NCBI GenBank assembly: GCA_965655095.1
Contig: OZ296651.1
Coordinates: 54,932,001 to 54,996,000 of the forward strand
From: Haplodiscus bocki
Lineage: Eukaryota
Direction of reading: 5' to 3'
DNA: 64,000 nucleotides
The notes under the pieces were generated by a model, which was given only the letters and a program-made list of their open reading frames with translations, made no database searches and was not told where the DNA came from. The translations under genes and the position numbers were made by a program. Of this stretch, positions 1,788-64,000 are shown one piece after another (within the stretch, counting starts at the first letter, position 1; each line of letters starts with the position of its first letter).

Positions 1788-2445
1788 TGTCGGGATTCAA
1801 GTATGGTTGCTCCGTTGAACAGATGAATAGCGATGGCTCGTCACCAAAACACTTGGAAGAATACCCCAGCGTCTTGCTACTTCTCACGTCTAAATCAATC
1901 ATCATTTGAACAAAAAAGTATTATTTTTGTGTGCTTCATTGTGAGGGTCGCTCACCCAGTTGACGTCCCAAAATACCAATCTCTTCCGAGTATCTTGTGC
2001 TTTTGAAGGGAATTATCCGCGCGACATTCAAGTCGATTGTTTCCGAGTTTTTTCTGATGAAACAGAATGTGTCTTAAATCCATCAACTGGAGGTTGCGAT
2101 GTCGACCGGCAATATCTATTGCTAGAAGTTCTTTGCTTTGTAACGGTTCATCGAATAAATTATCCAAAACAAATTTCGTTTGCTCTGCGCTGCAGCTTTT
2201 TCTAAAGAGTTCCATTCTTATCCTTGAATAAATTGAATATCAACAAGTGTGGACTCACAAGGCATCGAAAATAGTTCCGTAATGTTGATAATGCTTGAAA
2301 ATTTAGAATATTTTGTCGAAGCTAGGTGAAAGTGTTTTCCCCTGATTGACAATCCTACCTCCAATCAGTCTAATTTTCCCCCCGATCCCGATGGACCCGC
2401 AACAGAAACGAAGCAGTGAGGCTCGGTGCTCTTTCGCTTGTTCAA
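1745..2445 (-). pseudogene. Polinton-type DNA-packaging ATPase (A32/FtsK-HerA superfamily), copy A, frameshifted
   Basis: Minus strand gives Walker A 'FVSVAGPSGSG(K)' at ~2375-2415, Walker B 'FVLDNLFDE', 'AGRHRN', 'LRHILF', 'LNVARIIPFKSTR..EEIGILGRQLG' and 'MMIDLD'. This is the motif order of polinton ATPases. Confidence 0.85.
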
Positions 2446-4639: not shown

Positions 4640-5332
4640 TTTGTGCAAATCAACTGTTTTGAGTTTTTTGTAAACTCATTTTCGAGGTTCAAATACGGTT
4701 GATCCGTTGAACAGATGAATAGCGATGGCTCGTCACCAAAACACTTGAAAGAATACCTCAGGGTTTTGTTACTTCTCACGTCTAAATCATTCATCATTTG
4801 AACAAAAGAGTATTATTTTTGTGTGCTTCATTGTGAGGGTCGCTCACCCAGTTGACGTCCCAAAATTCCAATCTGTTCCGAGTATCTTGTGCTTTTGAAG
4901 GGAATTATCCGCGCGACATTCAAGGCGATTGTTTCCGAGTTTTTTCTCTTGAAACAGAATGTGTCTTAAATCCATCAAATGGAGGTTGCGATGTCGACCG
5001 GCAATATCTATTCCTATAAGTTCTTTGCTTTGTAACGGTTCGTCGAATAAATCATCCAAAACGAATTTCGTTTGCTCTGCGCACCAGCTTTTTCGGAAGA
5101 GTTCCCTTCTAATCCTTGAAAAAATTGAGTATGAACAAGTGTGGACTCACAATGCATCGAAAATAGTTCCGTAATATTGATAATGCTCAAAAAATTAGAT
5201 TTTGTCGAAGCTAGGTGGAGGTGTTTTTTCCTGATTGACAATCATACATCCAATCAATCTATTTTTCCGCGATCGTGCTGGACCCGCAACAGAAACAAAG
5301 CAGTGAGACTCAGTGCTTATTCGCTTGTTCAT
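4640..5332 (-). pseudogene. Polinton-type packaging ATPase, copy B, degenerate Walker A
   Basis: ATG at 5332 gives MNKRISTESHCFVSVAGPARSRK, followed by 'LDDLFDE', 'AGRHRNLHL' and 'GRQLG'. It is paralogous to copy A. Confidence 0.85.
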
Positions 5333-10754: not shown

Positions 10755-10910
10755 TAATATGGCCCATCGGGTACGTGAAAATAGTTCCAAATCCATAGGT
10801 CGCAGGTTCGAAACCCGCTATAGGCTATTTTCTGTACATTTTATATATCTCGCAGTGGTTGTCACAATGATTTTCGCAGCCACAGGTCGTGAGTTCGAAC
10901 ACCTGTGTAG
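10755..10910 (+). mobile_element. Two tandem tRNA-like (A box/B box) heads, SINE-like; second head repeated at ~14460-14516
   Basis: TGGCCCATCGG...GGTTCGAAACC, then (TGGC)GCAGTGG...G(G/A)GTTCGAAC. No intact cloverleaf is evident. Confidence 0.55.
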
Positions 10911-13900: not shown

Positions 13901-16900
13901 CAGAAGGTTTTCAAGAGGATTTTAACGAAAGAAGTTTCAAGATCGAGATGTTTCAGCTATTTGAAATATTCTTGCGTGAAACTTTGTCCTTTATCCTGGA
14001 AGGAAAAACTGAAAATGGCAAAAGACTCCAATGTGCCCCCTATCGTTTGGTTGCTAGCAGAAACTCTTTCAGTAGTTTTTTTCCGAAAAAATTGAAACTG
14101 CGAAAAAATTAGGATTTTTCAAGTCTAGCTTCGTTTTAAATGCTTGAAGCACTGAGGTTTCATTTCGAAGTAGCTGGCACGTTTTGTTGGCTTTTGGGAA
14201 AGTTCTTGCGGAGACTCTAGCACTAAACCCTGAGCGCTTATGTTTCATTTTTTTAACGGAAACTATACCAAAAGCCTATTTTCTTCCGAAAAAAAGTTGG
14301 AACTTTGTTCCCAACGCTTTTCGTGATAAAGCTACATTTTTTGCGAAAAAGTTGGAGTTTTTTCCGAGAGCTTTTTGTGATAAACTACTTCTAAGATGGA
14401 AGGAATCGAATCGAGGAGTTCGAAACCCCGTATAGGCTATTTTCTCTACAATTTATATATGGCGCAGTGGGTGTCACAATGATTTTCGCAGCCACAGGTC
14501 GTGGGTTCGAACACGTGTGTAGGTCATTAGTACTACGGCACATTTTAACCTCACGAAGTACTCGTAGTGTTACGCTTTTTCGCACGACATTTTGCGACTT
14601 CTTCCCATATAAAGAATTTGAAATTTTGTCCAAAACGCTGTAAAGCTGAGTGTGATTACAGGAAGGACCACTATAGTAGCGGTCAAAACGCGCAACTCAA
14701 AAATTCTTGTTCTTTAATTCAATTTAATTTACTTCTTAGGTTAGACCCTGAACTCTTCCGAATTTTTTCCTAATTTGCGACACATATGCGAATAATGGTC
14801 AAGGAAGAACCCTATGCATCAGCATAGAGACCGTTACAACGCGAATTGAAAGAAAATCATGAAAAGTTCAATTTTCAAGTTCCTCTGAAGAACTCATTCG
14901 AAGCAGCACTAGTAGCGGGAATGGCCGAGTAAGTTTTCAATTGTAATGGGGTTGATATCCAGGTAAGGGTGCAGATTGTCTGAGGATGTGGGAACTGGAA
15001 AAAAAATTAGATTTTTCCCAAATCCCGTTCACTGGAAAGCGAGGTTAGGCTAACTAGGAGGAGGACTGGCGAACTTTTACTCTCGAATAGTTTTCAATTC
15101 CAATGCGGAATACAATCGCGGCAATGAAGTGGTCAGTCTCAGTTGGCGAGAATTCACGGCATTAAAAAATTGTAATCAAATAATTGAACCTTTTGTACTG
15201 CGTTCGGAGAGGAAATAACTGGTAGGAAGAGTGGAGGTCGGCGAAGTCGAATCATTGGAAAACATTTCATTTCAAGTTAGTATCCGGACAAATGCGTGGC
15301 AATTCCTAGACAGTGGAGATAAAGGGATCAACAACTTTGTGGAAACAATAGACTTCTTCCTTTTTGGGCTTAGGGAGGGGAAATAAGGGAAGGAGCAGCA
15401 CGAAAATTCAAGGTGGCTAAATATATGCAATTCTAATTGTTGTATTAACCCCAGCCTAGGCGTGACTTTTCCCAAGCCTTGCGGATGGGGGGGAGGAAAA
15501 AAATGGGCAATATTCAGAATTTCGTACATACATCAGGGACGGTATGGTAAAAAGTTGGAATGGTTGGTGGATTAAAAGTGGGAAAGTTTTCATTTCTACT
15601 GCAGGGTGGTATCCAGGAAAGCTGGCTCTTTGCGCAGCCTGTGAAAGTCCAGATATTCTCATAGTTTTTGTACAATGAGAATAATTCAACTTCAGAGTTG
15701 GTTAGGGAGTTTGGGCCGGTCAATGGAAGTGGCAGGTGAATTCAAAGGTAACTAGAATTACCATATTTAAGCTGCAATGAATTGGCTCGGAGTGTACAAG
15801 AGACGGTACAGTTTGATCATTTGACGAACCTAACTCGCTCTTGCCCATTTTGTTTTGTTTTTGCTGTCTCTGTGAACTGAATTATAACATTCGAACCATC
15901 AAGCTATATCTAAACAATCGCATATCTAAGGGACTCACTGTTGAAGTCAGCCCCTTTGGTGGTTGAACTGAACCTGGATGACCTTTGTTGACTTGAGATT
16001 GTTGTGCTTCAATATGGGTATGTAAACTGTTTTCCTTCGTGAGATATCGACCTTCAGCGTTTGCCCATTATTTTGAAAGATTCCATACTGCAACGATTCC
16101 TCAGGAAATGGCCTGTAAAACGAAATTAAAACTCGTTTAGAACGGACTGCAGCCAACGAGCTGTGGTCTATTTAGCCAATTAGTCATTAAAAAGGGAAGT
16201 GACATATTTGGAAGTCCTCGTTAAAGTTAGCTTGGACTTCCTTTTTTCACAAGCCTCCGTAGTCTTCTTGCTTGATGCATTTCTCCTTGGGTATGATTTT
16301 CTTGGGAATGATTGGCAGCCCGTTCAAGCAAACCCCTTACCCAGAAGTCCTTCAAATGGTTTCCCCAATTTTTTTCCAAAGTTCTATCCGCCTTCAGCTG
16401 CTACATTATTTTTAGGTTAGCATACCGAAAGCTGAGCGCAGCCTCTTAAGACACCGACACTGGTGATTTCCATACCAATTTTCCGATTTCCACTCTGAAG
16501 TCGAACCTTTTTGTTCCAACCTCGGTATCTCTTTACCTATTTGACGCAGTTTTCTCCTTTTTGGAAAAACCTTACAATACTCTAATCGACCACATTATTT
16601 TTTCTGGTTATGGTCTGATTGGTTTTTTGAAGGAAACTTGAAAATCGAGCTAATTTTGGATCTTTTCACGATATTTGTCTGATAAAATGTCTTTTAGTTC
16701 CAAATGTGGGCATCCGAACCGCCTAATGTTTGCACGGGCTAAACGAGCAGACTCCGTTTTGTCACCTACTTGATTTTGGTCCAAGTGCAACATTTTTTGG
16801 ATTGGTTTTTTATGCGAAAGAAACTTGAAAATGGATCCTATCGTCACCTATTCGACAACATTGTCTTATAAGAAGTCCTTTCTTTACGCGCGTAGGCCTC

Positions 16901-18028
16901 CCAATTTCCTAATTTCTGCACAAATTTGTTTTGAAGAGATCCTCGTTTGTAACATACCAAAGTTTGGTTATGGTCGGAGGATTTTTCGAGTTCTTTTTCA
17001 AAAGATTGTTGAAAATCGATTTTTTTGTGTATATCCTTGTTTATATAAAGCTTTTTTTATTTTGGCTCCTGTGTCTTTGATTCAATTTTTTACAGCTTTA
17101 GTGGACAGATTTGCTCAAACCTAGCAGATTTTACAGTTTGGCTCTAAAAGTGTCCAGTAGGTTTCCTGTTCGAAAAAAAATCTTGAAATTTGATCTGCTC
17201 TGAAATTTTCGTTCAATATTAGTCGTTTTTACTGGATGGTAATAAGTCTAAGAACACCGAGATTTTGAAAACTTAGAAGGACGAGACCTGATAAGGTTAT
17301 CTGATCCATTTTGGTAGAGTGGACGAATTTTTTCGGTAGCTTTTCTGTCATGAAACTTTCACAATTGAGCTATTTGAGGCTATTTTGAAATTTGGTATTT
17401 TTCTTGTCTATGAAGGTGAATATAAAATTGACCCATATTCTGCGGTAGCACGGCAAAAAGACTCCAATCAGTTACCTATTGTTTTTGTGCTTTCCGGCGT
17501 CGATCAGAAGGTTTTCAAGAGGATTTTAACGAAAGAAGTTTCAAGATCGAGATGTTTCAGCTATTTGAAATATTCTTGCGTGAAACTTTGTCCTTTATCC
17601 TGGAAGGAAAAACTGAAAATGGCAAAAGACTCCAATGTGCCCCCTATCGTTTGGTTGCTAGCAGAAACTCTTTCAGTAGTTTTTTTCCGAAAAAATTGAA
17701 ACTGCGGAAAAATTAGGATTTTTCAAGTCTAGCTTCGTTTTAAATGCTTGAAGCACTGAGGTTTCATTTCGAAGTAGCTGGCACGTTTTGTTGGCTTTTG
17801 GGAAAGTTCTTGCGGAGACTCTAGCACTAAACCCTGAGCGCTTATGTTTCATTTTTTTAACGGAAACTATACCAAAAGCCTATTTTCTTCCGAAAAGAAG
17901 TTGGAACTTTGGTCCCAACGCTTTTCGTGATAAAGCTACATTTTTTGCGAAAAAGTTGGAGCTTTTTTCCGAGAGTTTTTTGTGATAAACTACTTCTAAG
18001 ATGGAAGGAATCGAATCGAGGGGTTCGA
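10805..18028. repeat. ~3.6-kb head-to-tail duplication (copy 1 ~10806-14417, copy 2 ~14418-18028)
   Basis: 11281-12760 matches 14881-16360 at an offset of exactly 3600, and the ORF track is duplicated. GTTCGAA is present at the left end, the junction and the right end. Confidence 0.95.
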
Positions 18029-18949
18029 AGAGCAGCATCAGCTACGTTTTCTTAAACGAAAGATATACCAAAATACGTAGTTTGGGATCGTCAGAATCAA
18101 CTCCGTCTTTTGAGTATTTTAAACCACACGAGCACGCCGCCGACTCAGGGCGTTCTCGGCCTCTTTGCTTTTCCCTGAAAAATTCCTTCAAAATTGTCTT
18201 GAAACTGTTTATCGCTTATTGTGCCCGTTAACAGGTCTAGTCTCCCACCATTTTATTGTTATTGTGGTTTTGGTTATAGGCACTGTGCATTATTATAAAT
18301 ATGGTTTTAGGACTTCGGAAATCGATTTTTGGTTTTTTGACGCTTCTTCGTTGCTTTTGCGACCTCATTCAAAATGACTAATTTCGTGCGACCTTTGAAA
18401 ATACTATTTTTTCAGACTTGGAAAAGCGGAGTGAGAGTACAGGAGGGACCACAGGGGGGAGCATCATAGCAGCCACGAGAGCGCGCAAATCAAAAAAAAA
18501 TCTTGATCTAGTAAATATACAAGTAAAGGCGTAACCCCCGGGACTTTTGAATGCTTTTTCCGGGTTCACGGGAAAGCAGAATAAGCGTTAAGTATGGGTC
18601 CCTATGTTTTTGCGAGTGAGTACTCCCAAAATTTTTGCGAAGTCATATCCGCCTGGGCCGGCTCTGTAATTGAAATGGCAGCAAAATCTTCGGACACCAA
18701 ATGGAAATTTTTCGGACGTGAAAAAAATTCCAATGAATTCGGAATTTTTGTAAATAAATTGCTCAAAAGATTCCTTTGGACACCTAGAAGTTAATTTCGG
18801 GAGTTTCAACGCTTTTTACTCTGGTTTTCGCTAGGAATTGATATCTCTTTCGAATAAAGGATGAAAAATCTTGAAAACTTTCATTGTCATTCTGATAAAG
18901 TTTTGTCATTTTTGAATATCCTGGAAAGTAGGCCTTGAAATCACGCGAT

Positions 18950-22672: not shown

Positions 22673-23767
22673 ATGAGCGGGTACAAATGCCTCAAATGTG
22701 AGGAAGGTCCTTTTGCTAGAAGACATGCTCTGGAATCGCATCTTTACGAATGTCACTGTGGCAATATATACCCAATGAAATGCAATATATGTGAATCCGA
22801 ATTCCGGTCCATGCATAACCTCAAAAGACATCTGGAACGAATGCACAGCTCTTATACACAGCCCCCCTCTGATTGCTTTGTAATTAGAATATGCCCTTAT
22901 TGCGAGTCAGAATGTTTCGACTATTTTGATTTACAAAGCCATATTCTTTCGAAACACCAGCAGTGGAAGTTTTCATCAAAATCTGCAAAAAATAGTGCTC
23001 CTAAAAACCACCGAGTTGGCAAAAAGAAAACAGTAGATTCTTTTCTGGTACCAAGTAACGATAAATTCGTTTGCTTGATTGCAGGATGTGGTGCTAAATA
23101 TCCTAATAGAAAACTCCTCAGCTCCCATTTACGGGATCACAACCTGAAAAATTCTCCAAAATGTGAAAGGTGTGGAAGGTATAAAGAAACTGGTCCACAA
23201 AGTTTTGTTGGCTGTGAAAACGCAGATTCAAACAACGACGTTACTGAATGTCCCTGTAAGGCTACCCATTTGTTCGAATGTGACAAAAGTGATTTCTGTA
23301 AGAAGGCCTACAAAGCAGCTTGGCTTCTTGCTCGTCATTCGTTATCAAAACACGAAAATGTATCTTCGGCATTTGAGTGCAGATATTGCAGCACCCAATT
23401 TAAATCAGAGAAGAGCCTCCTGGAACACATGAAAGTTCATTTCCATCCGAAAAGTTATCATTGCAATGACTGTGGAGATCGATTCAATCAACGGTCGGCT
23501 TTGACAAGGCACGTTGCAACTGTTCACAACTTACGACGCTCCAATTTTTGCTGTGTATGTGGATTGAGTTTTTCTCAGAGCGGCAACCTCAAAGTCCATG
23601 TAGAAAAAGTTCATGAGCTGAAATGCCAGAAATGTTTCGGAGTTTTTCGCGCCAAAGATGTGGTTGAGTTAGAAAGCCATGTGAAAAATTGTCAAGAGAA
23701 ACCTATTTATCTCATGGAGGATGATTTCAACGATGTCATGCAAGAAATTGAAATTCATGACATCTGA
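22673..23767 (+). CDS. Multi-C2H2 zinc-finger protein (~8 C2H2 fingers plus a terminal C2HC), single coding exon, 364 aa
   Basis: Repeated CxxC..F.....L..H...H motifs, e.g. CNDCGDRFNQRSALTRHVATVH and CCVCGLSFSQSGNLKVHVEKVH, in an uninterrupted ORF. Confidence 0.92.
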   Translation: MSGYKCLKCEEGPFARRHALESHLYECHCGNIYPMKCNICESEFRSMHNLKRHLERMHSSYTQPPSDCFVIRICPYCESECFDYFDLQSHILSKHQQWKFSSKSAKNSAPKNHRVGKKKTVDSFLVPSNDKFVCLIAGCGAKYPNRKLLSSHLRDHNLKNSPKCERCGRYKETGPQSFVGCENADSNNDVTECPCKATHLFECDKSDFCKKAYKAAWLLARHSLSKHENVSSAFECRYCSTQFKSEKSLLEHMKVHFHPKSYHCNDCGDRFNQRSALTRHVATVHNLRRSNFCCVCGLSFSQSGNLKVHVEKVHELKCQKCFGVFRAKDVVELESHVKNCQEKPIYLMEDDFNDVMQEIEIHDI

Positions 23768-43623: not shown

Positions 43624-44889
43624 ATGTTTACAAAATTTCTACGCACCCAACCTAGCACAAGCAGTGCTTCCCAAAGTAATTCCTCTTCTCCGAAAGTTAA
43701 TTTTGCGCAGAGGCAAATAGTTGTACAGTCAAACCAGGGTGTGTATCGAGAAAATCATGCACGATCTATGAACCAACAGCATCCTTCGAATTTGACGAGA
43801 AATGCTTACAGCGAATTCTCGGAAACTTTAGTTAACTCACCTCTGAGTCCTCAAGAGAAGTCGAAAGCAGACAATTGCTCGAGGATGTCGGGTCCTTCTT
43901 TTGGTCTTCCGAGTCCGCACTGTGAAAGTAGGAACTTCGTACAACTTTCTCCAAAATTTAGAGCGACAAACAATGGACATAAGTCTCCCATCTTCGCGTT
44001 TGCAAATTCTCCACAATCTCATTACAATGGAGATGGCGTCTCCTCGAAATACCATGATACGATTGAAAGCAACGTTCAATTAACCCCGGACCCTGACTGT
44101 GCACCGATGAACTTAACAGGTTCTAGTGATTCGGGCTCCTCCAAGGTACATTATGAAAACCCTATTCTGCCTAAAATGACATCGGCTGTACAGGCTATGA
44201 ATGAAAAGCTTCTTCCAAAGTTGAAAGAATCCGAAAATTTCAACTCCAAGCAAAATTGGAGAGGTATGTTGAACTGTGGAAAACGTACAATTGAAATTCA
44301 GCAGTCTTTAAATGAAGCTGTGCCATTGCTACAGTCAAACTTTGTTGAGTTTGAAGAAGAATGTGATTCATCCGAACCAGAAGCTTCTCCGGAAATTTGT
44401 GAACCGAATGCCGTTGCTAACAGTAGCCAATCAGGTTTGATAAGAGCAAGAAGCAAGTTCACTTCGACCGAGGATGACGCTGAGCCTGATTGGATGCGCT
44501 CTTACGGGCGTCCTGCTACCGTAGAAAACGAATGCCCGGGAAATGTCCCTTCTAATTCCTCCAATGAGTATCCACCAAATCGCAAACAAGATTTGAGGTA
44601 TGAATTGATTGCAATGTTCCGAGAGCAACAAGAAGCTATGAAGCCTCAAACTTCTGCAACATTAGAGAATAGACTTCCGTTGAGTCAAGAAAATGGGTTA
44701 CCGATAAATGCTATAAGTCCACTTGCTTATAATTGGGCGAGTTTTGGTAGAGATGATGTCCCTAATGTGCATTCTCCACAAAATACATTTACAAAGCCAG
44801 TTCACGACAATCCTCTGGTGAAAAGGCGTGCTAGAATGGCAAATACGCCCGTGCACCCTAATCTTCAACAGTTCAGTAAAAACTTTTGA
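43624..44889 (+). CDS. Hypothetical S/N/P-rich, probably disordered protein (~421 aa from ATG 43624; the ORF is open from 43573)
   Basis: 1.3-kb uninterrupted ORF in AT-rich DNA with many SP/TP sites and no domain I recognise. An acceptor-like TAG|G at 43614-43617 lies just before ATG 43624. Confidence 0.7.
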   Translation: MFTKFLRTQPSTSSASQSNSSSPKVNFAQRQIVVQSNQGVYRENHARSMNQQHPSNLTRNAYSEFSETLVNSPLSPQEKSKADNCSRMSGPSFGLPSPHCESRNFVQLSPKFRATNNGHKSPIFAFANSPQSHYNGDGVSSKYHDTIESNVQLTPDPDCAPMNLTGSSDSGSSKVHYENPILPKMTSAVQAMNEKLLPKLKESENFNSKQNWRGMLNCGKRTIEIQQSLNEAVPLLQSNFVEFEEECDSSEPEASPEICEPNAVANSSQSGLIRARSKFTSTEDDAEPDWMRSYGRPATVENECPGNVPSNSSNEYPPNRKQDLRYELIAMFREQQEAMKPQTSATLENRLPLSQENGLPINAISPLAYNWASFGRDDVPNVHSPQNTFTKPVHDNPLVKRRARMANTPVHPNLQQFSKNF

Positions 44890-46284
44890 ACTGTTTCATT
44901 TAGTTGTCGCGTAGCTTCAGTTTAAATGATGAAATCACGGCTTTGAAATTTGATGCCGAGATGGCGCTCAGTTGTTTTAGTTGGTAACTTGAATCGAATT
45001 ATTAATTTTGAAATTTGCTGAGTTTTTATTCTAACAAAAATCTGACATCGAGAAATGCTGTCTAAGCTTTTGTAGTCGGAGCTTTTAATGAGAAATGTCC
45101 CGAATAATATAGTGACTTTCTTTCGCTTTCTTTTGCAAGAAGCTCTGCGTGTCTTGGAATCGATCCAATTCTAGTGGACACGGCAGGAAATTCTCCAAAT
45201 GGTGGAAAGGTTTTTCTAAGAAAGCCCTAATTTCGGAAGGAGACAAAAGGTACCCGCTCCGAACTTTTTTTCGTAATGTGAGACAATTTTCGGACTAAAA
45301 TCGTTTTTTTTTGCAAATTCGGTTTACGCTTATGCCGTTTGTTACAGCGCTTTCGCCTATTGAGTTTGTGCTGAAAACAGTAGACTAGTCACCGCCAACA
45401 TAACAGCTTTGCCCAGTTGGGAGGTTACGTGGCAATAAATAGAACACCTGGGTGTAATTTTTGAAAGGTAGCCTTAAATGGGACATGATTTGGTAATTTT
45501 GCAAAATTACGCTTTAAAAAGGGTCCTGGCTAAGAAGACTTTTTTGGAATCATTTTATGAAAACCGGTCGTCATAAAACAGTGACTAAATTATACTGAAC
45601 ACTGAGAATTCGTGCATCGACGCGATTATATCGTACCGCTTTCAGTGGCCGCTTTTTCTCGGCGTTTATATCAACTGCGTTTGTTGAAATGTTGCTTCGG
45701 TTTTCGCTTAAATGAGCGCTTTGAGTTCAACCGAGCAATTCACTGTCCCTATGCTTCACCGAAAATTTTGTAAAATACAGTTTTGGAATGGAGGCTAAAT
45801 TTTTTATAACACCAAAGCTTAAGAGGTTTATCCGTACTCGGAGACGAAAAATTGATACCCCGTTTTTAATTGATTGATTTTTAATTGAAAAATTTTGAGC
45901 GCGAAAATCCAGAAAACCCGTATATCAATTATTTTCCCTTATATCCACTTGCATGCTCCAAAAGTTTCATGATATACATGCCAAAAAAGATCGTGGCCAA
46001 AATACCTATTTTGCAAAAATCGATAATCCGAAAGGCAAGTAGCAACTTTTTTCAACTTCTTAACCTTTCCAGATAGTGTATATCAGTTTTGAAAAATTAA
46101 TCCCTCTGAGTGTAAAGCATTGGCACTGAAAAAACTTTGTACGAAGAAAAATCCTGATACTGCACTAGACATTTTTTCCCGAAAACCCAAAACTTTTGAA
46201 CATCAGAAGCTCCCTTCCTGAGTATTTTGCTTTCCGGGCATATTTCGGCTGATGTACTCAAGTGCTTGATTCCCTGATAGATAT

Positions 46285-46757
46285 GGCAAGACGGCCCGCA
46301 ACCACTGGCATGTTTTCCGCCCTCCAATTTTTACAAAAATGCTTTTTAGAAAGTTGAAAGCGTATTTTTCTGACAGATACTTTCTGCAAATTGTCTAATT
46401 TTTATATATTTTCTGATTTCTTGTTGAAAAAACTCATTTTAGATAGAAAAAAAAGTTTTAAGAAATAATATCCTTTCGTACGAATTCTACAGCAAATATG
46501 CCATTTTTACTGATTTTGAAAAATATTTTTGTTTCTAACAAAACCCAACTTTTTTCCCAGAAAAACTCAAATTTCGTATTTGAAGAACCTTTCTATTTAA
46601 GTTGCACTCTACGGCAAATTTGCAACAATTTGGATAAAAAACTTTCAAACTCAGAAATGGCAGGACATTTTGCCCGGACATTTGGCAAGTATACGTAAAA
46701 AACCTTCGCGTTGAGTGGATAAATTTCCTTCCATATTTAAATGTGGGCAAAAAATTA
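46285..46757 (-). mobile_element. HINE family 1 copy downstream of ovo (duplicate at ~54025-54497)
   Basis: Runs from CAAGACGGCCCGCAACCACTGGCATGTTTTCCGCCC to CCATATTTAAATGTGGGCAAAAAAT. Confidence 0.75.
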
Positions 46758-47298
46758 TTGTTTCCTCAAACCTATGGTCTCTTCCATAATTCTGCAGCGT
46801 TTAATACAGGTTAGAATGAATTACTGCTAGTGAAGCATGAAATAAGCAGGATTTCCTATTTAATGGGAAGTGTACTCTCACTTCAATTCAAAGCATTCCT
46901 AAGCTCTGCAGTCAAAAAGTATTGTCGAGTGTGAATTTTGTGTAAATCATAGACAAAGCAGTCATTAGGGATATTTACAAATTATCACGCGACGAATGAC
47001 AATAAGTAAATACATCCATCCAAATTACATTTAGAAAAATTAATAAGATCAAGTAATTAAGAATCACTGGTTTTAAAAGCAGCAGTAACTAATCGACATT
47101 AGGTTGAAAATTGGTTGAGGTAATTAGTGTAGCACAAACAAGGAAACAAAATCCGCTTACTGGAGATTGTCTCTATATGAATTAATTGCAAGTTTCTAAT
47201 TACAATTAATTCATCTCTAAGTCAGTTTTTACTGTGAACTCAATGGAAGACGACATACTAAATGAGTCAATTCGTAAGTGTTTATCGGCTGTCATTTC

Positions 47299-49850
<2,552 letters not shown>

Positions 49851-50039
49851 GATGTTCAGTTACCAGTTGAAGCTGAGCACTATTTTATTGTTTCACCAAC
49901 AATAGAAGGTATTCGAATGAACGTTCGACTGACAATATAATGTATCAATGCTTTTTAAATATAGATGTCGTAGTTTTGATTAAAGATTCACAGTTTTGAA
50001 TATGACGAATATATTCGACTCCTATATTTGCTATTTTGC

Positions 50040-50260
50040 TGGCGTTTTGTTGCAAGTTCAACCGGTTACCTTTGAAGCATCACCTGTGAGTTTGACTAAC
50101 TCTGATTGACTACTGACTAATAATCTACAGTTAACCATTTAAAGTTTGCTTTGCTCTAGAAGCATCTTCGCGGCTCTCGCCTGTCACTCGTTGCTCATAT
50201 AAGGCCGAAGTTTTTGAGTCATTCAACTTTTGCCAACACTTTCTCATTGGCTGACGAGCG
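50040..50260 (-). promoter_or_regulatory. Putative ovo proximal promoter/5' region (duplicate at +7740)
   Basis: CCAAT on the minus strand at 50246-50250, a TATA-like stretch at ~50196-50202, ACAGTTA at 50127-50133, E-box CACCTG at 50081-50086 and AACCGGTT at 50060-50067. Confidence 0.45.
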
Positions 50261-51399
50261 CGATATTTGAAACTTCGGCTTGCTGGTTATTGAACTATAG
50301 CGGCCTATAGACACTTTAAATCAATTTTGTAACATATTTAAACCAATACAACAGTTATTCTACTATCGAAAGTAAACATATAGAACCAAATTAAAATCAT
50401 CAGTAATGAAGAAAGTTCGGCGGTTTGCATCAGGCTTAATATTTATCATGAATGAATATCTTCGAATATTAGCTCAGATATTTGCTAAAACTTTTAGACT
50501 ACTTCTTAACGGTCATTCACTTCTAAACTATCTCGAGAGCTTAAAGTCACGAATCTTTACGAAATATCAATTCAATACCGAATATGCAATGCTTTAATAG
50601 GATCGTTTTTTCATCAATATATAGCATGTACTTTTTTGGTTACATTACGAATGTTTTAAAATGGTGCAATGTTTGAAACTAGCAGCTGTCGTAGATTTTT
50701 GAACTCGCAGTTGTTTACGGTGGTGTAGAGGCTGATTCAGTGAAATAAAATGTTTGGCAACATATCTTAAGTCTGCATATAACCTGATGTCATCAAATCA
50801 CGAGTTTTATCATATTTTCATTTAGAAAATGTATCAAGTGAATAAGCTTATAACAAATGTGAATATGGTATCAGAGCAAAAAACCTTATACCGTCAACTT
50901 TCTCTATAGAAAAACATACTGTAAAAGCATTCATACAAAAGTGTCCACTCAACGAAGTTTTTGGTATTATGGTACAGAGTTTTTTACAAGAAGTGCGCCC
51001 AAAAATTTTTCGCTCAAAGTCCAAAAATTCATAAATTTAGTGCTGTTTTACCTTTCGTATCAATGCTTTGACCAAGAATTTTGCTGAATTAATTGGAAAT
51101 GATGATATTTGAAGAATTCGTACTAACAGTGCTGTAAATTCAACCATAAAGTTTGATACAACACGTAAAGTTTGATAACCCTCTGTTATGCTGATTTTTT
51201 TTGGAAAAACTAATTAAAGCACTGACCCCCCCCCCCCCACGAAAATTTTAACCCTTACGGGCAGTAGCAGTACCAAAGCTGTCAATATGAAATCTTTTTA
51301 CAGTTTTGAATCGCAAGAAATAGACACGTTTTTTTTTAAAAAAATCAACTTGCTAAACCTTCAATAAAAATTCAAATTAGGAAGGCGAGTTAACCTTCG

Positions 51400-52022
51400 A
51401 TAAAAATGGAAGTTCAGTGTCGCCAGCAAACGGAAGCAAATGTACATAATTTTTTTTCACTATTTGAGCCCCTCTTTTGACTGAAATCATTCTGACAAAA
51501 AAACTCCAAGCGTCAACAGAATTTCAGTCGCATTTTGACCAATACCCCAAAGATGGGCAAAAAATTTAAGTATTGAAAATTTGAATTAGCTTGGGTTTCA
51601 AGTATGTTTTGAAATAAGGAATCTCAAATTGGCGCTTTTCAATCAAATTGTTTTGCTGCAAAGATGCCAACTCATTTTGAATTTTTCAAGGTACCGAACT
51701 GGATTAATTTTGCTCCGTGGAAGGGAAGTGCATGTTTTTTTTGAAACACTTCCTTTGAAGATGCATTCCTTTTACCATAAAAGTTGTGGAATATGATGAC
51801 TTATTTTGCATTTTTCCCAAAAAAAACTTGGGGAGAACGATTTTCTAGAAACCTCACTGTATTAGGCGCATTCTTGGGCAAGTTTGGAGCATTTTGACAA
51901 AATACAAAAGTTTGAGCGTGAAATTATACTTTGTGAAAATATTGGCAGATTTCATGTAAAAAAAAACGAAATGTTGAATGAATGATTTTCCCACCGTCTA
52001 TGAAATATGGACGGAAAATATT
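51400..52022 (-). mobile_element. Diverged HINE family 1-like copy (duplicate ends ~59752); left boundary uncertain
   Basis: End TGAATGATTTTCCCACCGTCTATGAAATATGGACGGAAAATA matches the family terminus. Confidence 0.45.
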
Positions 52023-55000
52023 TAGAAGTGAACAATTTGTCCTGTTTTTAGAGAAAAAGTGCTATTGATCGATCAACGAAGTAGACAGAGATTTTTTAAA
52101 TCGTAAGAAAAATTTCGCAGGTGGAGTAATCGATGTTATCCTGGAGCTGCCCGTACGGCTGAATTTGCTGGTTGCTTTAATGTAATGAACTTGTAAGCCC
52201 TTCTCTCTTTCGAGAAACCTTGGAATTGTGAAATTTGCTCATAAACACGAAGTGGATAGATTCGAATTGCGCTCAAGCGTCTCACAAAAAAGTCACTGAA
52301 GTAGTAGGGCACTTTTACAATTTGGTTAAAAACACTTGCGATTAAAAAAATGATCAGAGGTAGTTCATTGAGTTGAAAGAAAGATCTTACTAATAAAGTT
52401 CCAAGGAAAAAGTATGAATAGTGATCAACTTACTTCTGATATTTTTTCTCTCAACAGCGATTCGATGTCGAAGAAACATTGAGTCGAGGCATCTTTGTAC
52501 GTCTTTTCTGGCATCCAAGTGCAAGAATCTGAAACAAAAATTATTAGGGACTCAAAACTTCACCATACTGATTGGATGGTTCAATCAGCCGTTTTTAAAA
52601 CAGCAAATCCATTTGGAACATTCATCTGCTTCAGAACTCCTGCGAGCAACGAATGAACTACAGAGATCAAATGAGTTTGAACTTGATTAAGTAAATTTTG
52701 CTTCAAAACTGCACTATATAATTAAGGCTTATTGTTCGAGTAAATCAGACCTAAAAACTAAGATGTTAAATGATATATGCTATAGTTTTTGTATAACTGC
52801 AATTGGGTGTCAGGACATTTCACCCCGAAGACATTTCACCTCAGGACATTTAACCCTGGTACATTTCCCCCCATGGAGATTTCATTCAACAGAAATTTCA
52901 CCCCGAATTGAAAAAAGCTTTAATGGGCGCTCATTATTTTCCGCCCATATTTATATTATGTAAGTAAAATTTTGGAAGGAGACAAAAGGTACCCGCTCCG
53001 AACTTTTTTTCGTAATGTGAGACAATTTTCGGACTAAAATCGTTTTTTTTTTGCAAATTCGGTTTACGCTTATGCCGTTTGTTACAGCGCTTTCGCCTAT
53101 TGAGTTTGTGCTGAAAACAGTAGACTAGTCACCGCCAACATAACAGCTTTGCCCAGTTGGGAGGTTACGTGGCAATAAATAGAACACCTGGGTGTAATTT
53201 TTGAAAGGTAGCCTTAAATGGGACATGATTTGGTAATTTTGCAAAATTACGCTTTAAAAAGGGTCCTGGCTAAGAAGACTTTTTTGGAATCATTTTATGA
53301 AAACCGGTCGTCATAAAACAGTGACTAAATTATACTGAACACTGAGAATTCGTGCATCGACGCGATTATATCGTACCGCTTTCAGTGGCCGCTTTTTCTC
53401 GGCGTTTATATCAACTGCGTGTGTTGAAATGTTGCTTCGGTTTTCGCTTAAATGAGCGCTTTGACTTCAACCGAGCAATTCACTGTCCCTATGCTTTACC
53501 GAAAATTTTGTAAAATACAGTTTTGGAATGGAGGCTAGATTTTTTATAACACCAAAGCTTAAGAGGTTTATCCGTACTCGGAGACGAAAAATTGATACCC
53601 CGTTTTTAATTGATTGATTTTTAATTGAAAAATTTTGAGCGCGAAAATCCAGAAAACCCGTATATCAATTATTTTCCCTTATATCCACTTGCATGCTCCA
53701 AAAGTTTCATGATATACATGCCAAAAAAGATCGTGGCCAAAATACCCATTTTGCAAAAATCGATAATCCGAAAGGCAAGTAGCAACTTTTTTCAACTTCT
53801 TAACCTTTCCAGATAGTGTATATCAGGTTTGAAAAATTAATCCCTCTGAGTGTAAAGCATTGGCACTGAAAAAACTTTGTACGAAGAAAAATCCTGATAC
53901 TGCACTAGACAATTTTTCCCGAAAACCCAAAACTTTTGAACATCAGAAGCTCCCTTCCTGAGTATTTTGCTTTCCGGGCATATTTCGGCTGATGTACTCA
54001 AGTGCTTGATTCCCTGATAGATATGGCAAGACGGCCCGCAACTACTGGCATGTTTTCCGCCCTCCAATTTTTACAAAAATGCTTTTTAGAAAGTTGAAAG
54101 CGTATTTTTTTGACAGATACTTTCTGCAAATTGTCTAATTTTTATATATTTTCTGATTTCTTGTTGAAAAAACTCACTTTAGATAGAAAAAAAAGTTTTA
54201 AGAAATAATATCCTTTCGTACGAATTCTACTGCAAATATGCCATTTTTACTGATTTTGAAAAATATTTTTGTTTCTAACAAAACCCAACTTTTTTCCCAG
54301 AAAAACTCAAATTTCGTATTTGAAGAACCTTTCTATTTAAGTTGCACTCTACGGCAAATTTGCAACAATTTGGATAAAAAACTTTCAAACTCAGAAATGG
54401 CAGGACATTTTGCCCGGACATTTGGCAAGTATACGTAAAAAACCTTCGCGTTGAGTGGATAAATTTCCTTCCATATTTAAATGTGGGCAAAAAATTATTG
54501 TTTCCTCAAACCTATGGTCTCTTCCATAATTCTGCAGCGTTTAATACAGGTTAGAATGAATTACTGCTAGTGAAGCATGAAATAAGCAGGATTTCCTATT
54601 TAATGGGAAGTGTACTCTCACTTCAATTCAAAGCATTCCTAAGCTCTGCAGTCAAAAAGTATTGTCGAGTGTGAATTTTGTGTAAATCATAGACAAAGCA
54701 GTCATTAGGGATATTTACAAATTATCACGCGACGAATGACAATAAGTAAATACATCCATCCAAATTACATTTAGAAAAATTAATAAGATCAAGTAATTAA
54801 GAATCACTGGTTTTAAAAGCAGCAGTAACTAATCGACATTAGGTTGAAAATTGGTTGAGGTAATTAGTGTAGCACAAACAAGGAAACAAAATCCGCTTAC
54901 TGGAGATTGTCTCTATATGAATTAATTGCAAGTTTCTAATTACAATTAATTCATCTCTAAGTCAGTTTTTACTGTGAACTCAATGGAAGACGACATACTA

Positions 55001-55038
55001 AATGAGTCAATTCGTAAGTGTTTATCGGCTGTCATTTC

Positions 55039-57590
<2,552 letters not shown>

Positions 57591-60538
57591 GATGTGCAGT
57601 TACCAGTTGAAGCTGAGCACTATTTTATTGTTTCACCAACAATAGAAGGTATTCGAATGAACGTTCGACTGACAATATAATGTATCAATGCTTTTTAAAT
57701 ATAGATGTCGTAGTTTTGATTAAAGATTCACAGTTTTGAATATGACGAATATATTCGACTCCTATATTTGCTATTTTGCTGGCGTTTTGTTGCAAGTTCA
57801 ACCGGTTACCTTTGAAGCATCACCTGTGAGTTTGACTAACTCTGATTGACTACTGACTAATAATCTACAGTTAACCATTTAAAGTTTGCTTTGCTCTAGA
57901 AGCATCTTCGCGGCTCTCGCCTGTCACTCGTTGCTCATATAAGGCCGAAGTTTTTGAGTCATTCAACTTTTGCCAACACTTTCTCATTGGCTGACGAGCG
58001 CGATATTTGAAACTTCGGCTTGCTGGTTATTGAACTATAGCGGCCTATAGACACTTTAAATCAATTTTGTAACATATTTAAACCAATACAACAGTTATTC
58101 TACTATCGAAAGTAAACATATAGAACCAAATTAAAATCATCAGTAATGAAGAAAGTTCGGCGGTTTGCATCAGGCTTAATATTTATCATGAATGAATATC
58201 TTCGAATATTAGCTCAGATATTTGCTAAAACTTTTAGACTACTTCTTAACGGTCATTCACTTCTAAACTATCTCGAGAGCTTAAAGTCACGAATCTTTAC
58301 GAAATATCAATTCAATACCGAATATGCAATGCTTTAATAGGATCGTTTTTTCATCAATATATAGCATGTACTTTTTTGGTTACATTACGAATGTTTTAAA
58401 ATGGTGCAATGTTTGAAACTAGCAGCTGTCGTAGATTTTTGAACTCGCAGTTGTTTACGGTGGTGTAGAGGCTGATTCAGTGAAATAAAATGTTTGGCAA
58501 CATATCTTAAGTCTGCATATAACCTGATGTCATCAAATCACGAGTTTTATCATATTTTCATTTAGAAAATGTATCAAGTGAATAAGCTTATAACAAATGT
58601 GAATATGGTATCAGAGCAAAAAACCTTATACCGTCAACTTTCTCTATAGAAAAACATACTGTAAAAGCATTCATACAAAAGTGTCCACTCAACGAAGTTT
58701 TTGGTATTATGGTACAGAGTTTTTTACAAGAAGTGCGCCCAAAAATTTTTCGCTCAAAGTCCAAAAATTCATAAATTTAGTGCTGTTTTACCTTTCGTAT
58801 CAATGCTTTGACCAAGAATTTTGCTGAATTAATTGGAAATGATGATATTTGAAGAATTCGTACTAACAGTGCTGTAAATTCAGCCATAGAACAGGTAAAC
58901 TTTGATGACCCTCTGTTATGCTGATTTTTTTTGGAAAAACTAATTAAAGCACTGACCCCCCCCCCCCCCCACGAAAATTTTAACCCTTACGGGCAGTAGC
59001 AGTACCAAAGCTGTCAATATGAAATCTTTTTACAGTTTTGAATCGCAAGAAATAGACACGTTTTTTTTAAAAAAAATCAACTTGCTAAACCTTCAATAAA
59101 AATTCAAATTAGGAAGGCGAGTTAACCTTCGATAAAAATGGAAGTTCAGTGTCGCCAGCAAACGGAAGCAAATGTACATAATTTTTTTTCACTATTTGAG
59201 CCCCTCTTTTGACTGAAATCATTCTGACAAAAAAACTCCAAGCGTCAACAGAATTTCAGTCGCATTTTGACCAATACCCCAAAGATGGGCAAAAAATTTA
59301 AGTATTGAAAATTTGAATTAGCTTGGGTTTCAATTATGTTTTGAAATAAGGAATCTCAAATTGGCGCTTTTCAATCAAATTGTTTTGCTGCAAAGATGCC
59401 AACTCATTTTGAATTTTTCAAGGTACCGAACTGGATTAATTTTGCTCCGTGGAAGAGAAGTGCATGTTTTTTTTGAAACACTTCCTTTGAAGATGCATTC
59501 CTTTTACCATAAAAGTTGTGGAATATGATGACTTATTTTGCATTTTTCCCAAAAAAAAACTTGGAGAATGATTTTTTAGAAACCTCACTGTATTAGGCGC
59601 ATTCTTGGGCAAGTTTGGAGCATTTTGACAAAATACAAAAGTTTGAGCGTGAAATTATACTTTGTGAAAATATTGGCAGATTTCATGTAAAAAAAACGAA
59701 ATGTTGAATGAATGATTTTCCCACCGTCTATGAAATATGGACGGAAAATATTTAGAAGTGAACAATTTGTCCTGTTTTTAGAGAAAAAGTGCTATTGATC
59801 GATCAACGAAGTAGGTAGACAAAGATTTTTTAAATCGTAAGAAAAATTTCGCAGGTGGAGTAATCGATGTTATCCTGGAGCTGCCCGTACGGCTGAATTT
59901 GCTGGTTGCTTTAATGTAATGAACTTGTAAGCCCTTCTTTCTTTCGAGAAACCTTGGAATTGTGAAATTTGCTCATAAACACGAAGTGGATAGATTCGAA
60001 TTGCGCTCAAGCGTCTCACAAAAAAGTCACTGAAGTAGTAGGGCACTTTTACAATTTGGTTAAAAACACTTGCGATTAAAAAAATGATCAGAGGTAGTTC
60101 ATTGAGTTGAAAGAAAGATCTTACTAATAAAGTTCCAAGGAAAAAGTATGAATAGTGATCAACTTACTTCTGATATTTTTTCTCTCAACAGCGATTCGAT
60201 GTCGAAGAAACATTGAGTCGAGGCATCTTTGTACGTCTTTTCTGGCATCCAAGTGCAAGAATCTGAAACAAAAATTATTAGGGACTCAAAACTTCACCAT
60301 ACTGATTGGATGGTTCAATCAGCCGTTTTTAAAACACAAATCCATTTGGAACATTCATCTGCTTCAGAACTCCTGCGAGCAACGAATGAACTACAGAGAT
60401 CAAATGAGTTTGAACTTGGTTAAGTAAATTTTGCTTCAAAACTGCACTATATAATTAAGGCTTATTGTTCGAGTAAATCAGACCTAAAAACTAAGATGTT
60501 AAATGATATATGCTATAGTTTTTGTATAACTGCAATTG

Positions 60539-61343
60539 GGTGTCAGGACATTTCACCCCGAAGACATTTCACCTCAGGACATTTAACCCTGGTACATTTC
60601 CCCCCATGGAGATTTCATTCAACAGAAATTTCACCCCGAATTGAAAAAAGCTTTAATGGGCGCTCATTATTTTCCGCCCATATTTATATTATGGAAGTAA
60701 AATTTGTCACTCAAAGCGGTGTGTTTTCTTACGTTTACTTGCCAATTGTCCGGACTATTCTGAATTTGAAAGTTGCCGTAAATGCAACTGGAATAGTAAG
60801 ATTTCTCAAAACGTATGAAATTTGAACCCTTCCATGAAAAAAAGGGTTTTTCAAAATTGTTAAAGGTGGCAGATTTGCTGTAGAATGCGTATCAAATGGT
60901 ATGACTTCTTGAAAATGTCTTTTTTCCTTAATTGTAAAGTTTTTTTGCAAACAAAATCAGAAAACTTTCAAATTTGGAAAAATTAGAATATACATGAAGT
61001 ATTTTTTGAAAAAAAAACCGTTTTCATTCTTTTAAAAGGCATCTTTAACAAAATTGGACGGCGGAAAATGTGCCGGTCGTAGCTGGCCGTCTTGTATTAA
61101 TATGCATGATCTATTTAAGTGATCGATAGTACCATAAATAGAACGAGGTGTAAATAGCAATAATTCTGTGCGGAGGCCCTAATTGAGTATTCTGTGCAAT
61201 GAGGTGTTAATTGCAATACGGTCTTGCTAGGTCAGTAAATTGAGTGATAAGTATAAGTTGCAGTACCAAGAATAAAAAATATTTCTTTAATTAGACTTCC
61301 TAATTAACATGCTTTCAAAATTGGGGTGAAATTTCCTGAAACC
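60539..61343. mobile_element. MULE-like MITE with subterminal tandem repeats, interrupted by a HINE; its left part is also copied at ~52807-52933
   Basis: TIRs GGTGTCAGGACATTTCACCCC / GGGGTGAAATTTCCTGAAACC; 9-bp TSD CTGCAATTG (60530-60538) / CTGCCATTG (61344-61352); repeated ACATTTCACCCC-like units. Confidence 0.8.
60667..61096 (+). mobile_element. HINE family 1 copy in canonical orientation, nested in the MULE-like MITE
   Basis: 5' TTATTTTCCGCCCATATTTATATTATGGAAGTAAAAT (subTIR plus partial inverted repeat); 3' GGCGGAAAATGTGCCGGTCGTAGCTGGCCGTCTTGT (subTIR, stem-loop, TCTTGT). Confidence 0.8.
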
Positions 61344-61708
61344 CTGCCATTGTATCATTTTAATTTACTGTACTATAGAATTATTGATGAGTGAGAAAAG
61401 TCTGATTTGATGAGCCAATAAACCTGAGTCATGGTCAGACAGATTTTCAATAAGTCTTCCAGTTCCTGCGTTGCAATAAGCAAGGAAAAGCACATTTTCA
61501 ATTTTCATCGAATAGGCAATGAACCCAATTGTCTTAGTTGAAAATTTGAAAACAGCGATACCGAATAAAAATCAAATTTACAACCTCTGAAGTAGAAATG
61601 ACGATTATTTCTTAATTATAATCTATCGTTCTATATTATTTGATATTGTTTTGTGAAAGTTGAAAATGATAACATTTTGTATCATTTCACTAAAGCGTAC
61701 CATTTAAC

Positions 61709-62006
61709 GGAACTTTTTCCTCCCCCTCCCACGCATTGCCAAAAGTTTATGCGAATTGATTTTCAGAAGGATAATTAAAACATTTCCCTAGCTTTTTTTT
61801 CGAAAATTTGAAATGTTGAATAATATTTCCAAAAATCTTCCAGCTCCCCCCCCCCCTGCGATATTTTTTTTCAATTTTGCAATGGCATTTTGGTCTTTAT
61901 TCAACATTTCAAAAATATGCTAAGACCTTCAGAAATTTTATTATCTGTTTGAAATTCAATTTTAAATTTGACAATGCGTGGGGGAGGGGGAGTGGGGAAG
62001 AGTTCC
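61709..62006. mobile_element. Fold-back MITE (~300 bp)
   Basis: GGAACT..CCCCCTCCCACGCATTGCCAAA pairs with TTTGACAATGCGTGGGGGAGGGG..AGTTCC; internal TGAAATGTTGAATAA pairs with TTATTCAACATTTCA. Confidence 0.72.
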
Positions 62007-62051
62007 AATATTCCCATTAAAAAATTATATTGAATAATTGAATGAATAAAA

Positions 62052-63023
62052 AACAAGACGGCCGGCTAGCACCGGCATATTTTTCGCCCGACTACAAATA
62101 TTTTGATCAACTCTTCCAAACGGTTAAAAACAGAACTACACTTTCGATATTAGTTTTCAAAGAGTTTTTACAAACATCAATTTGACCACTGATTTCTGTA
62201 CTTTATGCAAAAGGGTATCACGATTTTCCGTTGAAAAATTTTTGTCTCACAGTGCCGAAAAATTTCGTCGAGGAACCTTTCTGTGTTTCGGAAAATCTCT
62301 GGTTTCGAAAAATTTTATGGATAAGAGGGGGGGGGGGAGTATCGAGATTTTCTGTCGAAAATTTTTTGTCTCACAGTACCGAAACATTTCGTAGAGGAAC
62401 CCTTCTGCGCTGTGTTTCAGAAAAATTCCGGTAGCCAAAAAGTTTATGGCTAAGAGGGGGGTTAGTATCAAGATTTTCCGTCGAAAATTTTTTGTCTCAC
62501 AGTACCGAAACATTTCGTAGAGGAACCCTTCTGCGCTGTGTTTCAGAAAATTTCTGGTAGCGAAAAAGTTTATGGACAAGAAGGGGGGAGTATCAAGATT
62601 TTCCGTCGAAAATCTTATGTCTCACAGTGCCGAAAAAAATCGTAGGTGAACCCTTCTGTGCTGTGTTTCAGAAAATTTCCGGTTGCGAAAAAGTTTATGG
62701 ATAAGAAGTAGGGAGTATCAAGATTTTCCGTCGAAAATTTTTAGTCTCACAGTGCCGAAAAACATCGTAAAGGAACCCTTCACTGTTTCACTAATTTCCG
62801 GCATCAAAAAATGCTAAGGGTAAATCGTAAAAATATTTGGCACGACAGAGACTCGAACCCGGAACCTACTGTTTGAGAACGCTGTTGTCCTAACCATACT
62901 GCTATCATTTATTTTTGAATAAATAGAGTTGGCAGTTTTGGTCAGATAAAAAAAAATTTGACCCCACTGTACACTGTACTGAATGAATAATTTTTCTTGT
63001 ATATTTATATACGGCGAAAAATA
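62052..63023 (-). mobile_element. HINE family 1 variant carrying a ~125-bp tandem array and a tRNA-like cassette
   Basis: Runs from AACAAGACGGCCGGCTAGCACCGGCATATTTTTCGCCC to ATATTTATATACGGCGAAAAATAA. The minus strand has TAGCAGTATGGTTAGG and GGTTCGAGTC at ~62840-62905. Confidence 0.75.
62214..62800. repeat. ~125-bp tandem repeat, ~4.7 units
   Basis: GTATCAAGATTTTCCGTCGAAAATTTTTTGTCTCACAGTRCCGAAA starts at ~62215, 62339, 62466, 62590 and 62714. Confidence 0.92.
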
Positions 63024-63040
63024 ATAATTTGTGTATGTTT

Positions 63041-63095
63041 GTGTGTGTGTGTGTGTGTGTGTGTGGGGTGGGGTGGGGTGGGGTGGGGGGGGGGG
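63041..63095 (+). repeat. (GT)12 microsatellite fused to a (GGGGT)4+G11 tract with G-quadruplex potential
   Basis: Read directly from the sequence. Confidence 0.85.
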
Positions 63096-64000
63096 TTAGG
63101 TGAGGAAAGAGATCCCATTAACAACTTAGAACTTAGCTTCAAAACGACTTAATTCCGTCTTCCGGTGCATGGAGGGGTGTATCAAACAGATGGGAAATGA
63201 TTTAAATTAACAAAAAACTAAAACGAATTTTAGGGACTGAACTTTCTGAAACGAAATCTTTGCGATGACTCATTTTGTGAAAAATCACGTTTGCGAGATT
63301 AACTGCTCACGTTATTGACTATTTTCTCAACTATTTCAATTTAAAACTAATTCAGTATTTTTGCACCAGTGAAGGGGATGAACGTTTTATCTAATCACTA
63401 AGAAACTGAAAATGGCAGATTACCAGATAACAACTTACGGTTATGGATGAACGTTTCCACATTTTGATGGTTTTCCAGGAAATTTACTGAACTTTTAAAG
63501 TGTGTGCGACGAAAAGATAGAGTCGGAAAAAGAATAGGATGTGCAAAAGCGAGCAAGGACTAGAAGACAAGAAGTGATGTACCGGTAGTTTGTGCGGAAA
63601 GTAAACAGTTGTTGCTACACTGAATCATGTTTTGTACGCCTTGGAGTCTGAGTTGAAAATGGTGACAGAATTTGTAGATGCTTTGCAGTACAACGATCAG
63701 AATTTTCGAATTGGCTTCTTTCGGATATTGGGTGACTTGATTTTAAGACTCACCAGCTGTTAATGAGATGACACGCCGTGAGTGACGCGACTTTTTCAAG
63801 TGCTTCTTTTTTTCCCACTCATTGTGACTTTTATCTTCTGATGAAGACAGAAGTGGATGAGGAGAGAAGAAGGTGAATAAAATTTCCGTAAGTGAACAAC
63901 AGCTTGGTTCACGTTGCTCTGCAATTAGTTCAATCAGCCATTGACTGGCTCAATTTAACTTTCATTAATAACACACAATCCATTTTTACTAATGAGTTTG

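Follow-up and report, generated by a model that had tools for sequence, protein, structure and literature searches.

A young, probably microhomology-mediated partial tandem duplication at the ovo locus of Haplodiscus bocki

Results

The ovo locus has five coding exons, of which four are duplicated

The ovo gene of Haplodiscus bocki lies on the minus strand of contig OZ296651.1 (assembly GCA_965655095.1), and its exons 2-5 are present twice, head to tail, within the 64,000-nucleotide stretch analysed here (positions 54,932,001 to 54,996,000 of the forward strand; hereafter the window). Exon 1, which carries the start codon, is single and lies beyond the window end. Exon 1 and the proximal set of exons 2-5 (copy B) constitute one complete gene, and the distal set (copy A) is 5'-truncated, with neither a start-codon exon nor an upstream region of its own. 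A sequence-only reading of the window had described a recent whole-gene tandem duplication with both copies intact. Our analysis retains a young tandem duplication, probably biological, with intact reading frames, but not its extent: the single exon 1 is ~8.3 kb outside the duplicated unit, and copy B alone forms part of a complete gene. The features of the locus are as follows (window coordinates; all on the minus strand except the junction, which has no strand).

69152-69029 of the extended window (L011:5152-5029; G000:C4:55001152-55001029), minus: exon 1, the only copy; ATG, MPNFFLLKKRKKEYDLEAERKQFHESVKDEAYDDMYSPNYV, donor G/GT in phase 1; ~5 kb past the window end
60706-64000, minus: single-copy part of intron 1 inside the window
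52968-60705, minus: copy B of the unit, proximal to exon 1, with which it forms the complete five-exon gene
60168-60262, minus: exon 2, copy B; identical to copy A
56090-57317, minus: exon 3, copy B; K118 and Q258, plus 4 silent differences from copy A
55871-56010, minus: exon 4, copy B; identical to copy A
55039-55689, minus: exon 5, copy B; identical to copy A
52968-52972: junction; gap-free, AATTT microhomology
45229-52972, minus: copy A of the unit (self-BLAST, alignment and exon check), distal, downstream of copy B in transcription; exons 2-5, 2.07 kb of 3' flank and 441 bp of intron 1; no exon 1
52434-52528, minus: exon 2, copy A; 95 nt, ..SCTWMPEKTYKD..REKISE; AG acceptor, GT donor, in-frame ATG; placed by tblastn to residues 57-90 of the Symsagittifera roscoffensis OVO protein (P0123)
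48350-49577, minus: exon 3, copy A; 1228 nt; disordered region and zinc fingers 1-2; allele N118, L258
48131-48270, minus: exon 4, copy A; zinc finger 3, linker and start of finger 4
47299-47949, minus: exon 5, copy A; rest of finger 4, C-terminal region ending ..RVETEI, stop codon

The exons were placed by tblastn with the S. roscoffensis protein XP_063723422.1 (P0123) together with inspection of splice signals, and the model was assessed exon by exon. The five coding exons, of 124, 95, 1228, 140 and 651 nt, add up to 745 codons plus a stop. AG precedes every exon and GT follows every internal exon, and there are no internal stops; this holds for exons 2-5 of both copies, so that the earlier statement that both keep frame and splice sites stands. 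The same reading had counted four coding exons, all inside the unit. In our model there are five, and the unit holds exons 2-5.

That exon 2 is not the first exon came from its 5' boundary, which is a tttcag acceptor, with the first two bases of the exon completing a split codon. The S. roscoffensis protein has 56 further N-terminal residues beyond its match to exon 2. The counterpart of those residues, MPNFFLLKKRKKEYDLEAERKQFHESVKDEA..., was found once in the window plus the next 10 kb and is 74% identical over 31 residues. The exon that holds it starts with ATG, encodes MPNFFLLKKRKKEY... and ends in ..TAT GTT G/gtaagg. Its last G joins the AT of exon 2 to form GAT, giving ..NYV-D-SCTW.., as compared with ..TTV-D-SSTC.. 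in S. roscoffensis, so that the V-D join is conserved.

For a whole-gene duplicate, each copy would have all coding exons, a start codon and its own 5' region. A second copy of exon 1 was not found in the window plus 10 kb. Moreover, no part of 60706-74000 is repeated elsewhere in the region, except for a tandem array within intron 1 of ovo (62215-62831) whose unit of 125-126 bp occurs in 4-5 copies that are 61-93% identical. The phase-1 donor of exon 1 is compatible with the acceptor of exon 2, the first exon to be duplicated, which places the right breakpoint of the unit in intron 1, 441 bp upstream of exon 2. The ~3 kb that had been taken as duplicated upstream sequence is thus intron 2 (to which 49730-51130 belongs), exon 2 and 441 bp of intron 1. 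Along the direction of transcription, exon 1 is followed by an 8.8 kb intron 1, exons 2-5 of copy B with their own 3' end, the junction, and exons 2-5 of copy A.

The gene is the only ovo/OVOL orthologue in the genome

A collinear tetrad of C2H2 zinc fingers in fixed order defines the ovo/OVOL family (PMC3380836). In the H. bocki gene, fingers 1-2 are encoded by exon 3 and finger 3 by exon 4, while finger 4 is split between exons 4 and 5. Pfam zf-C2H2 matches are found in the gene, and BLASTP shows that the fingers are collinear with those of named ovo/OVOL proteins (e.g. residues 70-125, 127-172 and 173-234 of P0057). The best named matches are OVOL1/2/3 and 'transcriptional regulator ovo', with 65-76% identity over the fingers (68-71% for fingers 1-2 and 65-76% for finger 3 with the linker). 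Finger 4 is 44-54% identical in four of five vertebrate and echinoderm ovo/OVOL proteins, and 31% over a longer stretch in the fifth.

Vertebrate OVOL1/2 have a SNAG-like N-terminus (MP.F.LKK). Such an N-terminus is encoded by exon 1 of H. bocki, and occurs once per locus. No other locus in the genome exceeds 43% identity in the finger region. By every feature tested the gene is a family member, and it is the genome's only ovo/OVOL orthologue. That ovo is usually single-copy in invertebrates, as the sequence-only reading had it, is true more loosely than was put: several invertebrates, including Nematostella and a leech, have two OVOL genes (PMC3380836), so that a true second ovo would not be unheard of.

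The nearest named relative is the S. roscoffensis protein, whose source label is 'GLI3-like'. The two proteins are 100% identical in fingers 1-2 and 93% in finger 3 (exon 4), and at the protein level they also share the MPNFFLLKK N-terminus, the C-terminal ..ETEI and the V/D at the exon 1/2 join. They differ in that H. bocki has exons 2-5 twice and that identity falls to only 39% in the disordered part of exon 3. Open reading frames (ORFs) at 22682-23683 (+) of the window encode several C2H2 zinc fingers that are unrelated to ovo, giving weak tblastn matches only.

The two copies of the unit meet at a gap-free junction with 5 bp of microhomology

Self-BLAST of the window revealed a direct tandem repeat, 45229-52972 against 52968-60705, with a 7.74-kb unit arranged head to tail. 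An alignment of 7752 columns puts the identity of the two copies at 99.29%, the differences being 33 mismatches and 11 gap openings; this is the 7.74-kb repeat that had been reported. All indels among the 44 difference events fall in non-coding DNA in the full alignment, also as reported.

The window does not contain a single N. At the junction (52968-52972) the sequence reads GTAAAATTT/TGGAAGG, the left boundary of the unit CCCTAATTT/CGGAAGG and the right boundary GTAAAATTT/GTCACTC, where the slash marks the breakpoint. The junction is gap-free and has neither spacer nor filler, and the 5-bp AATTT, which had been noticed before, is the sole sequence common to both breakpoints. For random pairs of breakpoints in the window, the probability of sharing at least 5 bp is 0.008. 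The left breakpoint (45229) is 2.07 kb downstream of the stop codon, and the right one (60705) is in intron 1. The head-to-tail order, the absence of filler, the short microhomology and the lack of long homology at the breakpoints are the hallmarks of a microhomology-mediated tandem duplication.

The full junction sequence is unique in the 1.5-Gb genome, where the gene segment of the unit is present only twice; a separate haplotig copy of the unit was not found anywhere in that genome. An exact-pattern scan of metagenome contigs gave 0 matches to the junction, as expected. The ORFs that span the junction are only 21-40 aa long, with TTG starts.

Several other features lie near the breakpoints. 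Two dispersed repeat families flank the junction, at 52801-52934 (=60534-60667) and 53048-53240 (=45308-45500), each family having dozens of copies across chromosomes at 75-91% identity. Elsewhere, the family of 52801-52934 is often found as inverted pairs ~370 bp apart, in the manner of a miniature inverted-repeat transposable element (MITE). At the ovo locus no inverted partner was found, and a search for inverted repeats that would delimit a complete MITE around the right breakpoint gave no pairs. To the left of the unit, a 295-codon open frame (44002-44886, plus strand, i.e. opposite to ovo) ends 343 bp from the left breakpoint. Pfam gave no match to this frame, which might be the terminal exon of a neighbouring gene convergent with ovo.

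The differences between the copies form a mosaic

In the coding region, the copies differ only in exon 3, the large exon of the earlier reading, which had given 2 replacements and at least 4 silent differences. There are exactly 6: two replacements (N/K at 49224/56964 and L/Q at 48805/56545) and 4 silent changes. The copy-A-specific coding letters are at 48375, 48805, 49020, 49086, 49110 and 49224. As had been stated, the zinc fingers are unchanged at the protein level. For the six coding differences, the ratio of nonsynonymous to synonymous divergence (dN/dS) is 0.14 (binomial P = 0.023).

Over the whole unit the divergence is 0.43%, and it is unevenly distributed. Two tracts, 46492-48374 (1883 bp) and 49857-51142 (1286 bp), are free of differences, and the other three segments diverge by 0.5-1.3%; the longest difference-free gap has P = 0.0002 under an even spread. 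This mosaic suggests either gene conversion between the copies or an origin from two different alleles via exchange between homologues. The latter would explain a dN/dS below 1 with no selection on copy A. Dating the duplication from the 0.43% divergence was considered and dropped as unreliable, since the differences are mosaic and the copies may descend from two different alleles.

The repeat is probably present in the animal

Could the tandem repeat be a product of assembly? The segment might be single in the animal, or in the animals that were pooled, with its two haplotypes placed in succession in the assembly. We consider this rather unlikely, while several observations do point that way and weigh against a genuine duplication. 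A divergence of 0.43%, indels confined to non-coding DNA and a dN/dS of 0.14 are also expected of two alleles of a constrained gene, and the difference-free tracts of 1.9 and 1.3 kb fit such alleles as well. In addition, under-collapsed heterozygous regions tend to persist in acoel assemblies when these are built from pooled wild animals (PMC9911081).

Evidence to the contrary comes from a public protein collection, in which a 233,256-bp contig of a different assembly carries two large-exon ORFs, one with N and L, which is exactly copy A, and one with K and L. The same contig has a 109-aa ORF that crosses the right boundary of the unit (window 60496-60822). The assignment of these ORFs to one contig was made from their identical contig size. 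Copy B of the window (K and Q) is absent from the collection. Taken together, these ORFs would represent three alleles over two loci, with N/K fixed between the copies and L/Q varying within copy B. Two copies, together with the N/K difference and a third allele, are thus seen in another assembly or haplotype of this species as well. This argues against two haplotypes in tandem, although the 233-kb contig may come from the same assembly at an earlier stage or after different polishing. Nine other short ORFs, from the unit, its flanks and exon 1, had no exact match in the protein collection; this is uninformative, as they were perhaps never called as genes. In the closest relative that the collection contains (P0002/P0122, 75% identical), each contig has a single ORF, which is compatible with a species-specific duplication but is not proof of it.

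The structure of the junction also speaks against misassembly. Falsely tandem haplotypes normally abut a gap or a contig end and create no new junction. Here the sequence is free of gaps and Ns at the junction and around it, and the joined sequences share nothing beyond 5 bp, so that an overlap assembler would need a read that carries the join; as calculated above, even these 5 bp are seldom shared by chance. Furthermore, an older duplication of the same type is found 27 kb away, as described below. We therefore consider that the repeat is probably present in the animal and not only in the assembly. That it is a genuine, young and ordinary microhomology-mediated partial tandem duplication, with copy A a truncated passenger, is likely but a little less certain.

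A second, older tandem duplication lies nearby

About 27 kb from the ovo unit, the window contains another tandem duplication (10806-14424 / 14418-18029), with a 3.6-kb unit, 97.85% identity and 59 mismatches. Its junction is gap-free as well, with 7-8 bp of microhomology (GTTCGAA). The like junction of the older pair suggests that events of this kind occurred here on separate occasions. Near the start of the window, an overlapping direct repeat (3-3567 against 2907-6454) is 89.6% identical with a ~2.9 kb period.

Discussion

Here, we have determined the exon structure of the ovo locus of H. bocki and found that exons 2-5, together with 441 bp of intron 1 and the 2.07 kb that follow the stop codon, are repeated in tandem. 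How the repeat could have arisen is suggested by its junction. A microhomology-mediated, non-homologous event, either a replication template switch or end joining, would have duplicated a 7.74-kb segment with one breakpoint in intron 1 of the only ovo gene and the other in the DNA beyond its stop codon. Non-allelic homologous recombination between repeats was also considered and was rejected, as the breakpoints share only 5 bp. In known systems, template switching of the FoSTeS/MMBIR type (fork stalling and template switching / microhomology-mediated break-induced replication) or microhomology-mediated end joining leaves the same spacer-free head-to-tail copies with microhomology at an otherwise unrelated junction. 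The ovo repeat resembles these duplications in having its breakpoints in an intron and in intergenic DNA, and the junction of the older neighbour has 7-8 bp of microhomology. We see no structural difference from them, while the mechanism at ovo is deduced from the junction. Microhomology-mediated tandem segmental duplications often yield partial gene duplicates, and partial tandem duplication by microhomology is a common kind of structural variant; in this respect the duplication is ordinary.

What would the duplication mean for the gene? Exon 1 and copy B would make up a working gene of 745 codons that is undisturbed by the event. Since exon 1 would splice to the nearest acceptor, that of exon 2 in copy B, and copy B keeps its own 3' end, the function of the gene should be untouched. 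Copy A would be a promoter-less, 5'-truncated passenger that probably contributes little.

There are, nevertheless, routes by which copy A could be used. Transcription might continue past the end of copy B and be followed by cis-splicing, either from exon 1 to exon 2 of copy A or from exon 2 of copy B to exon 3 of copy A, the phases of which are in frame. An internal promoter could also drive copy A. Finally, a spliced leader could be trans-spliced to the exon-2 acceptor of copy A. In S. roscoffensis, 30% of genes are trans-spliced, and its spliced leader has been published (PMC9911081). With up to 3 mismatches allowed, this 32-nt leader has 1641 occurrences in the H. bocki genome, and many of those listed match it exactly; the reversed control gave 0. 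H. bocki is thus another acoel with the leader of S. roscoffensis, despite the low identity of the two species in ovo exon 3. Past the exon-2 acceptor, the first ATG is in frame, and it is conserved between the two (TWMPEK in H. bocki, TCMPEK in S. roscoffensis). On these sequence grounds, trans-splicing into copy A is not far-fetched.

It is thus worth weighing whether copy A is a functional second gene, expressed by itself from a promoter in intron 2 or through trans-splicing and encoding an OVO protein that begins at the exon 2 ATG (MPEK...) and has no SNAG-like N-terminus. Copy A retains exons 2-5 undamaged, together with every splice site, and the dN/dS of 0.14 and the conserved ATG would agree with such a role, as would the leader and its use in S. 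roscoffensis. In the same species, a predicted isoform (P0124) joins an alternative N-terminus to exon 3. However, with 6 coding differences in all, the copies are too recent for their intact state to be informative, and a dN/dS below 1 is explained equally well by descent from two pre-existing alleles. The first exon of the S. roscoffensis isoform X2 had no matching counterpart in the window, and, apart from the missing N-terminus, the two proteins differ by two residues only. We consider it unlikely that copy A is a functional second gene and that the duplication would thereby begin to split repressor-type and activator-type isoforms into two genes. The fuller proposal, in which copy A is transcribed by itself or trans-spliced from read-through RNA and translated from the exon 2 ATG, so that a full-length SNAG-bearing and a SNAG-less OVO would each have a gene, seems slightly less likely still. 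Our preferred reading remains that of one complete gene followed by a truncated passenger.

In Drosophila, the single gene ovo/shavenbaby yields repressor and activator forms through alternative promoters and processing. The H. bocki locus would be comparable if proteins that include or lack the N-terminal part both came from it (a comparison drawn partly from PMC10762455); it differs in that the two forms would here be a prediction from sequence.

For annotation, the structure of the locus matters in that an automatic or sequence-only reading would count two ovo genes, whereas there are one complete gene and one 5'-truncated tail copy. If the duplication is real, it would, together with its 97.85%-identical neighbour, provide a datable example of tandem duplication of the microhomology type. 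Expression of copy A would raise its importance, as a promoter-less downstream copy is not necessarily silent in an animal that trans-splices. If copy A did give rise to a SNAG-less OVO, the duplication would be a first step in splitting the repressor and activator isoforms of a master regulator into separate genes, enabled by spliced-leader trans-splicing.

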